In this document: positions 16,770-20,300 of the stretch, one piece after another
How positions within the stretch are numbered: position 1 is the first letter of the stretch
Layout of the letters: every line of letters begins with the position of its first letter
The notes under the pieces: model-generated
Seen by the model: only the letters and a program-made list of their open reading frames with translations
Told to the model about the DNA's origin: nothing
Databases searched by the model: none
Made by a program: the position numbers and the translations under genes
NCBI GenBank assembly: GCA_977016875.1
Contig: CDRNST010000096.1
Span: 1,860,001 to 1,924,000, forward strand
Origin: Pavona decussata
Taxonomy: Eukaryota
DNA: 64,000 nucleotides
Direction: 5' to 3'

Positions 16770-17395
16770 GGAAGCTGCTTACAATGGCTAGGGATAAAGT
16801 TACCACCGATGGCTACCCATTTAAAAAAGGGCATTCAAGATCAAAACACATGTCAAGTGAATCTGATGAGCCTCCTTGTAAAAGAAAGAAAATTGATGCA
16901 GAAGAGAGGGCAAGTGAAATAAAGCTGTTGCAAGATAATTTGGAGACATAAGACAGTCGCCTTCGCGTTAAGCAGCAGCTTTTGGATAAGGCGCGCTCCC
17001 TTCAGAATTACAAGCAGTGTGATGAAATACTTGGAGAAACAATAAAAGTAAGGAAGGAAAAGGCAACTATCCAGAATCAATTGCTAGAGTTCCAAAAACG
17101 AGAGAATAAGTCTTCATGGTACCACAAGAAAAAGCAGAAAAAACAACACAAGGAAACTAATGTGAAACAAACAGAGGGAAATCAGAAGCTTCCTTTCCTT
17201 TTCAGACGTATGAGCAGCACGTCCAGCGAGAGTGATACTAGCATCATTTCCACCTCAGAATCTACTACAGAATGTGAAAGTACAAGCCCCAGGAAAGAGT
17301 CTGATGATGCTGGTGATTGTACTGCCGTAGAAAAATTCGCTGGTATTAGTAAGCAGGATTTTCAGGAAACCCCTCCACATCAGCAAACAATGTGA
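16770..17395 (+). pseudogene. Accessory ORF1 (basic, coiled coil) of the Zator-like element
   Basis: Exon after CCCTACAG: GYPFKKGHSRSK..KRKKIDAEERASEIK.., with one in-frame stop at 16949 and a Ser/Thr-rich tail that overlaps ORF2 in the -1 frame. Confidence 0.55.
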
Positions 17396-20300
17396 GGGGG
17401 GTCAGAGAACTTGTTGCTATTTATTATCGGGAACAAAAACGTGAGTTGTCGAAATGTGCGGCTGTTGGACAGGATATTTGTATTTCTGTATTTGAAGGGC
17501 TCTCTTTGGAGGAGTATGTTGATGTACGTTCTTCAGTGTGCGGTACCACACACAAGCAACCTTGTAAAAATTGTTGTGGTTTGCTTCAGGTTGCAAATGA
17601 AGTTCTACAGAAAGGTTTTTTGAAGTTAAGGTCAGCATTTGAAATGGCATATCCAGATGCAACTTACAAATCTTGGCATGCTCGAAGGAGGATGCTTCAA
17701 ATGCCATTAGCAAGTCTAGGGATTGGAAATCGAAGCAGAGGTAGCTACTCCATCTTCTTAATGGAAAAACAAGATCGAGTGAAGTATCCAATAATGCAAA
17801 CGCTCTTAAACCAGTGGATTAAATGTGAAACAGCGGAGCCATCGTTACCGCTTACCAAAGAAACTATGAACAGTCTTCTTCAAATTGCAGAGTCTGATGC
17901 AGAGAGAAAATGCCTCAAGTATGCCGTTGTTAGGGCAACTGGTTTATCTAACACCAAGGCAAAAGAAAAGTATGGGTTTAGTGATATTGGCACCACTTTA
18001 TCCCAAGTAGAGCAAACATTGGATGAAGTCTCAGCCATCCATAAAGCGATTGAGAAAATTGCTCAAGTAAAAGACAAAGTGTTGCTAAAATCACTAGGTG
18101 TTCCAATGGAGATGGAAGGTGAAAGTTCCGATGAAAGTGAAAGCAATGATGATGAGGGCGCTGGTGCTGATGATGAAGATGGCCATGGGTGTGGCAATAA
18201 TGATGGCGACAGTGATGGTGGGGGTAATGATGTTGATGGTGATTGTGGAGGTGGTGGTGAAGGTGATCATGCAATTTCCTCACAGGTTAGTAGTGGTGAA
18301 GTTGAAAGTGCACAGAACCTGACCTGCACGCAGGTTGATGGTAGACATCAGTTCCAATTAACAGACGAACAATACAAGCATATCAGTGATACTGGCGAAT
18401 GCTATATGAACACCCACCAACTCCTTGACATCCTTCGCAAGTGCAACCTAAACTGGTTGGAGTTCATCTGTGCATTAGAGGTGTTGATGCCAAATGCTGC
18501 AGAACATGTTCTTGAACAAGTGCTACTCGACTTTGCAGGGCAATTGCCCTTCCTTGACCTCAGTGAACATGATGAGCGCATTATAGAACAGTCCCGGCAG
18601 GTATACCTTGAGGAGAAAAGGCACCAAGAAATTGAGAGTGAAATCGCTGATGTAATGATAGTGTGAGATTCCGATTCTGATTGCGCTGAAGAGTGGCAAC
18701 GTGTACGTGATCCTCTTGATGAAGCTGGACTGGATATTATCAAGAAAAAGAGGGCAGTGATCCGAAGAAAAGCAACAAGGGAAGTTAAAAAGCGTGTTGC
18801 AGAAAGGCGTTATTTAAGAAGAAGGAAAAGCAAGAAAGTTGGGAGAATACAAAGGGAACACCCTGACATTGGCGAAACAATTGAACAATACGTTCAAAAG
18901 TGTGGTGTGGGTGCCGATGCTTGGAGGCGAACCGGTGTGTTGACATTTGATGGCAACAAGTGTGTTGGGAGGAAAGTTACGTTTAAAAGAATTCAGGAAC
19001 ATCTGCAAGCCAAATACAAATCTTCTTTTAGTTATGGAAGTGTTGTGCAGTTGTGTGTTGCCTGGAATAAACGTCGCAAGTCTGCTGCTAGATACAAAGG
19101 GTTGGCACAAGTCGTACAGAGACGTGCTAGAAAGGGGTTCACGCTAAAAGACAATCCCAATGCTCATTGGAGTTCTGCATTGTATGCCGGCTTCGATAAG
19201 CTGCAGTACACTAATGGAAACAACATCATGAACCTGGGCCGTGATGATCAGGCTGGCTTCAGGTTAGATTCAATGACCACCCATAAGCAGCATGGAACTC
19301 TGTGTTTGAAGAATGAAGTCCCACTGACCACTCGAACAGACTATGTGAATCGATATCCCTCTGTCTTGCAGACAACATCGTACAATTTTCCTGCGACCGG
19401 TACAACAGATGAAATATGCGCTGGCGTTGTTAAAGCCGAGCCGCTGCACTGCAAGAATCCTGCCCAGCACTTTGAAGACCTCCTGATGGTAGAAGACAAA
19501 CCAGAAGTAAAGCCTGCATTTCATAACCATCAAACAGGCAAATTGAAGGAAATTGAATGTGCCAGAGTTGATGGTGGAGCAGATGAGGGTCCCATACACA
19601 AGGAAGTGCAGTATTGGTGGACCAAGAGGCACCCACAGAAAGGACACAAGGCAACACTAATCTCAACCAGGAACAGTGGGGAGAGTTATCGAAACAGAGT
19701 CCAATTGCAGAATGGTTGTTTGGCGCTGGGTCACACAAATCTCTTCATTCCATCAACTTGGTATGGATCCTGCCTTGAAAATGGCAAGGTCAACAGTGAC
19801 ATTCTCTGTAAAAATTTAAGTTCTGCTATCGATGTTTACTTGAGCCGAGTCAACCAAAGCCCATGTGCCGGAACGGTAATACACCTCTGGAAGGGTCCTG
19901 ACAGCAAAGATCATAAACTCAACGGGCTGCAGTGCTGACATATTTAAAGGGAAAGAAAAATGAAAAGGAGCAGTTAAGGAGGAGCCACCCAGATCTTTAT
20001 AAGAGCATTCATGAAATTTGGACACTGAAGAATAGCCACATGGTACCAAATCTACCATCCCAGTATCTCTTCTACCTTAGATGCTGCTATAATCCTCAAT
20101 GCATCCACCCAGTCTGCAAGACAACTCAGCTGGAAGACATACCATGGTTCCCTGGTGGCCACTCCATCTCTTTTCTGCCCACACCTACACCTGATCCTAC
20201 CAGGCCGTTTGGAAATGATGCTTGCACTGAATGCAGTGGGTTTTGTGCTGGCCATTACATGAAACTGAACGAGCTTCTGGATTACGTTAACAGTGGCAAC

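Follow-up and report, generated by a model that had tools for sequence, protein, structure and literature searches.

How can a transposase be made whose reading frame is closed upstream by stop codons and overlaps only the very end of the preceding open reading frame? The question is raised by a DNA transposon copy in the coral Pavona decussata, located in the stretch of 64,000 nucleotides which we analyzed as a whole and refer to as the window. Judged from sequence, the probable answer is programmed −1 ribosomal frameshifting, by which ORF1 and the transposase would be fused in the manner of bacterial IS3. The features of the copy are the following:

16428-20417, + strand: stretch common to the window and the intact copy L015 (blastn, 98.2% identity)
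16770-17395, + strand: ORF1 exon remnant with a coiled coil and a Ser/Asp/Glu-rich tail, ending with TGA at 17393-17395
17353-20417, + strand: ORF2 (transposase) in the −1 frame, with a Cys/His cluster, a helical and winged-helix region and the DDE core
17356-17362, + strand: slippery heptamer G_GAT_TTT in ORF1 phase, GAT and TTT being ORF1 codons
17363-17369, + strand: 7-nt spacer, in which CAG stands where most relatives have a stop codon
17369-17402, + strand: putative stimulatory hairpin of 12 bp with one bulge and a 9-nt loop, the 5' arm C-rich and the 3' arm G-rich
about 20641-20703, − strand: right terminal inverted repeat, its end motif common to L001, L002, L016 and L021

ORF1 occupies frame 2 and ORF2 frame 1, that is, −1 relative to ORF1. 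Upstream, frame 1 is blocked by TAG at 17347 and TAA at 17350, and it is open only from 17353. The start of the ORF1 exon was put after the “cag” at 16767-16769, as inferred from where the protein similarity begins. The heptamer, the −1 phase, the 7-nt spacer and the stem-loop had been located correctly to the base in the original prediction. Its further claim that ORF2 lacks an early ATG despite encoding a Cys/His cluster there also holds for the window copy, where the first ATG in the ORF2 frame follows 94 codons past the heptamer and beyond the cluster.

In the hairpin the arms 17370-17380 and 17390-17399 pair across nine bases, and RNAfold assigns −16.7 kcal/mol to the structure, the bulged base being an A. 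To judge this stability we used a positional energy scan, in which the hairpin window was the stablest of 3149 42-nt windows in the element (z −4.2). Both strands of the 64-kb window together have 1831 TTTT sites, and a comparable downstream hairpin was found at only three of them. Because its stability is unmatched within the element and so few TTTT sites have a counterpart, the hairpin is not a chance feature. Another T run in the window precedes a hairpin of very high stability, at 42766-42807 (+ strand), with −24.4 kcal/mol over 42 nt; this hairpin has no relation to the transposon. A possible pseudoknot between the loop (17382-17386) and 17414-17418, 15 nt past the stem, was noted in the window family only. 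As a general feature it was rejected, the loops of most relatives being only 3-5 nt long.

The window copy itself is a pseudogene, and its site is probably the fossil of a frameshift signal. Homology to L015 begins abruptly at 16428 and ends at 20417 (blastn). The 5' truncation has removed the CIDE-N exon and the left inverted repeat, and an internal deletion after 20417 has removed the PHD-encoding 3' end. ORF1 carries a private in-frame TAA at 16949-16951, which both the protein P0121 and L015 read through. In ORF2 a private TGA (18664-18666) and the loss of one nucleotide near 19911 (frame change at about 19911-19920) are likewise read through by the homologous proteins. The catalytic Glu of the DDE triad has become Gln (CAA, 19702-19704). 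On either side of the element lie two ORFs on the + strand (13735-14346 and 20778-21200), which by eye are alike and resemble retrotransposon ORF1-type proteins.

With so many private defects, a first guess was that the frame change between ORF1 and ORF2 is one more private indel of a decayed copy. In L015, however, ORF1 is open and ORF2 is open over 1109 codons, with heptamer, spacer, hairpin and −1 relation identical to those of the window copy. Other copies having both ORFs in one frame had been named beforehand as the result that would speak against frameshifting; found instead was the −1 relation, in this intact 98% copy and in 14 further lineages. The indel is thereby refuted, and we assign it practically no chance.

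The element belongs to a widespread inverted-repeat DNA transposon family of corals and relatives, whose proteins form over 2500 clusters when grouped at 50% identity and which has been active recently in corals. It is about 6 kb long and contains introns. Intact ORF1 encodes CIDE-N, a region resembling NAB NCD2, a coiled coil and an acidic tail; intact ORF2 encodes a DDE transposase of roughly 1100 aa with a PHD finger at its end. Upstream of ORF1, a CIDE-N exon with conserved GT donors was found in nine loci, among them L015 (546-995), L019 (544-843), L020 (503-802), L001 (2024-2296), L008 (571-855) and L003 (339-614). Because of this exon and its conserved donor, ORF1 is predicted to be a spliced CIDE-N protein. 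The distance between the CIDE-N exon and ORF1 is 0.6-1.4 kb in many lineages. The NAB co-repressor domain NCD2 (PF04905) was detected in ORF1 of L022 (1799-2515, E 4e-8) and L025 (1422-2465, E 1e-6), above the curated Pfam cut-off, and in L025 the entire ORF1 (348 aa) is a single exon.

Classification of ORF2 depended mainly on structure. When the ORF pieces and the intact ORF2 were compared to Pfam, NCBIfam and the PDB sequences, only a weak match to the terminal PHD finger was obtained, and Foldseek against the PDB gave nothing below E 0.001. In a wide structural search the model of the DDE core (pLDDT 80) matched best to Mos1 and Metnase, with a modest Z of 8.5, and IstA, retroviral integrases and Sleeping Beauty ranked next. 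Asp, Asp and Glu are invariant in 65 members of the family (alignment A8). According to the model, the ORF2 core is a DDE fold nearest to Mos1, within the IS630-Tc1-mariner group. Zator transposases are expected to be related to bacterial TP36/ISAzo13. The ISAzo13 models of Pfam and NCBIfam matched neither L015 nor any of the 65 family members, and the label “Zator-like” is plausible but unproven. Weak homeodomain matches upstream of the DDE core were observed in 8 of the 65 family proteins (best E 7e-4); a helix-turn-helix DNA-binding region at this place, as in the Tc1/mariner enzymes, is suggested.

Regarding the ends of the element, inverted repeats of 38 nt (95%) flank L021, and an inverted repeat with the same end motif is present at single ends in L001, L002, L016 and the window. 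At five termini the flanking letters are TA and then A or G, with TAA and TAG at L021, the sole locus with both ends. These flanks would suit a TA target-site duplication or one of 3 bp, the latter being the length expected for the Zator superfamily.

To follow the site through the family we gathered junctions by means of ORF calls, a metagenome scan with a four-sequence alignment and contig look-ups, leading to a comparison set of 26 sources in 15 divergent lineages, down to about 35-40% protein identity. ORF2 lies in the −1 frame in all 15 lineages. At the homologous place, and in ORF1 phase, every lineage has N_NNU_UUY except L024, which has U_UUU_UUG. The original prediction had proposed looking for conservation of the heptamer and of the −1 phase among family members, and both are kept. 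The codon before UUU is GAU, AAU, GGU, UCU, CCU, UAU or CAU, and its last base is invariably U, without which Phe-tRNA in the A site could not re-pair in the −1 frame. Besides the window family, five further lineages have exactly G_GAU_UUU. Among the relatives we find the canonical A_AAU_UUU, G_GGU_UUU and U_UUU_UUG as well as non-canonical P-site variants, and for several heptamers (G_UCU_UUU, A_CCU_UUU, G_UAU_UUU and G_CAU_UUU) poor P-site re-pairing is expected, which counts against frameshifting. An independent protein search returned Phe as the C-terminal residue of nearly all ORF1 homologues. The ORF1 stop lies directly behind the heptamer in 11 lineages, where TAA, TAG and TGA all occur. 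Because it follows 2 to 11 codons further on in the window family, L021, L022 and L025, a stop adjoining the heptamer is usual but not essential.

In every copy that looks intact, the −1 frame has no stop between the heptamer and the conserved domain. The encoded peptide is conserved from the heptamer on, beginning with Phe-Leu and continuing with Pro-Ser-Ser, Gly-Arg-Gly and Leu-x-x-Ile-Tyr.

The hairpin is conserved in position, with the stem core beginning 6-8 nt after the heptamer in 14 of the 15 lineages. Of 16 loci scanned with about 3100 windows each, 8 have as their stablest the 42-nt window starting 5 nt past the heptamer, and in five more this window is within the top 0.3%. The base of the stem, CCCC/GGGG, is widely common; it also codes (Pro ... 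Arg-Gly), and protein constraint may be behind part of its conservation. The upper stem varies between lineages yet stays paired. As MAFFT could not align the 3' arms by column, we relied on the energy scan and on an arm-swap test, in which 5' and 3' arms of different lineages were combined. Native hairpins have a mean of −16.1 kcal/mol compared to −9.8 kcal/mol for these chimeras, and for eight loci all 16 chimeras are less stable than the native hairpin. The upper stem therefore covaries, with compensatory changes keeping the pairing, and the stem covariation asked for in the original prediction was found together with a conserved spacer and hairpin.

From six loci a covariance model was derived; it served only to test detection in held-out loci, its alignment having put the upper stems into insertions and its searches having given reverse-strand and chance matches. 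It detected the held-out junctions of L001 (E 8e-8), L013 (E 0.005) and L006 (E 0.08), and it is weak on the longer-looped forms, with an E of about 5 for the window's own site. The lineage of L010 and L012 (L010:588-640, L012:1512-1564) possesses a weak 5-bp stem, in whose 3' arm A's stand where others have G's. L012 looks intact despite this stem, with heptamer, stop and long open frames kept; in this lineage the signal is either weakened or another structure is in use. L016 and L011 are decayed copies.

A conserved hairpin at the junction of two ORFs might also be read differently, namely as a signal for RNA stability or at the DNA level, with ORF2 translated independently by reinitiation, from an internal entry site or from a non-AUG start. 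The frequent ORF1 stop right at the junction would suit this, as would the in-frame ATG soon after the hairpin in L002 (+14), L006 (+10) and L003 and L017 (both +18). Yet across the loci the first in-frame ATG of ORF2 occurs anywhere from 10 to 131 codons downstream, at a position that is not conserved, and in the window family, L001, L019, L007 and L021 it lies more than 90 codons downstream, past conserved residues. Because the ATG is variable and often beyond conserved residues, full-length ORF2 apparently cannot come from a start codon of its own. Conservation of the −1 peptide from the heptamer itself argues in the same direction, and so do the loop lengths, which vary by multiples of three and thus preserve the frame. 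Furthermore, reinitiation after an ORF of 200-350 codons, as would be needed here, is not expected in eukaryotes. We consider independent translation of ORF2 unlikely.

Splicing was the alternative raised in the original prediction, with TTTTCAG (17359-17365) as acceptor; another small intron could join the frames in the same manner. Introns do exist in the element, with the GT donors conserved after the CIDE-N exon, and a YAG stands at the place of the acceptor in the window family and L021. This AG (17364-17365) is not conserved, however. Because all three stop codons occur right behind the heptamer in the relatives, there is no conserved splice acceptor; in L001, L006-L009 and L011 the TAA or TGA is without a nearby AG. 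In addition, conservation of ORF1 extends to the Phe and that of the −1 peptide begins with the same codon, leaving no room for an intron.

The family is present in coral polyA and metatranscriptome runs, and contigs from four RNA runs were collinear with the DNA and contained no splice joints, at a shallow coverage in which none bridged the site by 31 nt on both sides. These contigs have the letters of intact copies at 18665 and 19702, where G restores the catalytic Glu, as well as one more A near 19911 and three inserted nucleotides at 17405. Since they span the putative intron stretch too, their source may be DNA or pre-mRNA, and their collinearity is weak support against splicing. Taken with the variable sequence behind the heptamer, this makes splicing across the junction hardly credible.

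The same contigs touch on RNA polymerase slippage, by which some mRNAs would receive ORF1 and ORF2 in one frame. A homopolymer is indeed placed exactly at the frame change. The contigs have the genomic run length, and no 1-nt change at the U run was seen in them at their low depth; as contigs drop rare variants, a minor slipped mRNA would not show. The run of just 4-6 T is short compared to known slippage sites, and a covarying hairpin at a fixed 6-8 nt is a mark of ribosomal shifting that has no role for the polymerase. Slippage of the polymerase is therefore very unlikely in our view.

We return to programmed −1 ribosomal frameshifting. The characteristics looked for in such a site are present: a heptamer in phase, a stem-loop 5-9 nt downstream and a long conserved −1 ORF without a start of its own. 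The conserved phase, spacer and hairpin and the compensatory changes support this reading, which the original prediction had put forward, as far as a comparison of sequences can. With this anatomy, its conservation and the covariation seen directly, and neither an alternative start nor a splice site seen, the following course of events is proposed. In intact copies a single mRNA would carry two frames, ORF1 and then ORF2 at −1. Termination at or shortly after the heptamer, with release of the ORF1 protein, would be the fate of most ribosomes. The smaller part would be held up by the hairpin 6-8 nt downstream and slip back by one base on the U run, and these slipped ribosomes would produce the ORF1-transposase fusion. 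As the stem is about 13 nt away from the P site, the ribosome would most likely slip while UUU is in the A site; alternatively, UUU may occupy the P site when the slip takes place, over the stop codon. Re-pairing by the tRNA in the P site would be good in some lineages and poor in others. We infer that ribosomes do shift here, at some rate, and that transposition is regulated by the proportion of the two products, as it is by OrfA and OrfAB in IS3.

RNA viruses, retroelements and bacterial insertion sequences commonly employ programmed −1 frameshifting. The layout closest to that of the coral family is found in IS3 and IS1 (OrfA/OrfAB), where an accessory ORF likewise precedes an ORF for a DDE transposase that lies in the −1 frame and lacks a start of its own, a slippery run is combined with a downstream structure, and the fusion is the likely transposase. 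The heptamer differs, being A_AAA_AAG in IS3 and U-rich in the coral family. The coral elements also differ in being eukaryotic, in having introns and a length of about 6 kb, in the CIDE-N and NAB-like domains of ORF1 and in the PHD finger of ORF2. No homology to IS3 or IS1 transposases was detected with the transposase models of Pfam and NCBIfam, so that the likeness is one of layout only.

With regard to the heptamer itself, the plant viruses offer the nearest comparison. G_GAU_UUU is functional in PEMV2 (PMC4737148). If P-site re-pairing is blocked there, 36-40% of the activity is left (PMC4737148, PMC5009743), and a nearby stop codon is needed, whichever of the three it is (PMC5009743, PMC4737148). 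PEMV2 and the dianthoviruses share the identical heptamer with the part of the coral family that has G_GAU_UUU, and PEMV2 has a 0-frame stop at or near the site that can be any of the three, as is the case here. The findings on P-site re-pairing and stop identity match the variation among the coral-family lineages. Unlike these plant RNA viruses with their long-range RNA pairing, the coral family is an animal DNA transposon with a simple local hairpin. The gag-pol arrangement of retroviruses and LTR elements is similar in its abundant upstream protein, its rare enzyme fusion and its geometry of heptamer, spacer and stem-loop; these elements are reverse-transcribing, whereas the coral family is a cut-and-paste DDE transposon with inverted repeats.

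Among eukaryotic DNA transposons, our literature search gave only isolated cases, namely yeast KAT1 and the ciliate Tec elements. KAT1 of Kluyveromyces lactis, a domesticated hAT transposase, has a −1 frame break that is bypassed by programmed frameshifting (PMC4763223, PMC4316626). It resembles the coral ORFs as a transposase-derived eukaryotic gene with a programmed −1 shift. As one domesticated gene of a fungus, from a different superfamily, it contrasts with the mobile, multi-copy coral family, whose signal is kept across deep lineages. Tec2 of Euplotes crassus, a DNA element with a gene expressed via a programmed +1 frameshift as cited in PMC5405496, is more distant, being a ciliate element with a +1 shift at shifty stops and a tyrosine recombinase. 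In a full-text literature search we found no report of frameshifting in animal DNA transposons or in transposons bearing CIDE-N.

The deeply conserved signal provides a natural set of covarying frameshift sites that can be tested in animal cells. It is also a warning for annotation, as gene callers split the gene in two or invent introns. Expression of the transposase of such elements from ORF2 alone would not be possible.

Tentatively, and with considerable doubt, we propose that this animal cut-and-paste family, an ancient one, has converged on the strategy of IS3, a stop-aided −1 shift fixing the ratio between a CIDE-N/NAB-like regulator and the transposase fusion. If this convergence is true, translation and not transcription would limit the transposition of these elements, and the near-universal sequence of heptamer and then stop may make termination a part of the metazoan shift mechanism.
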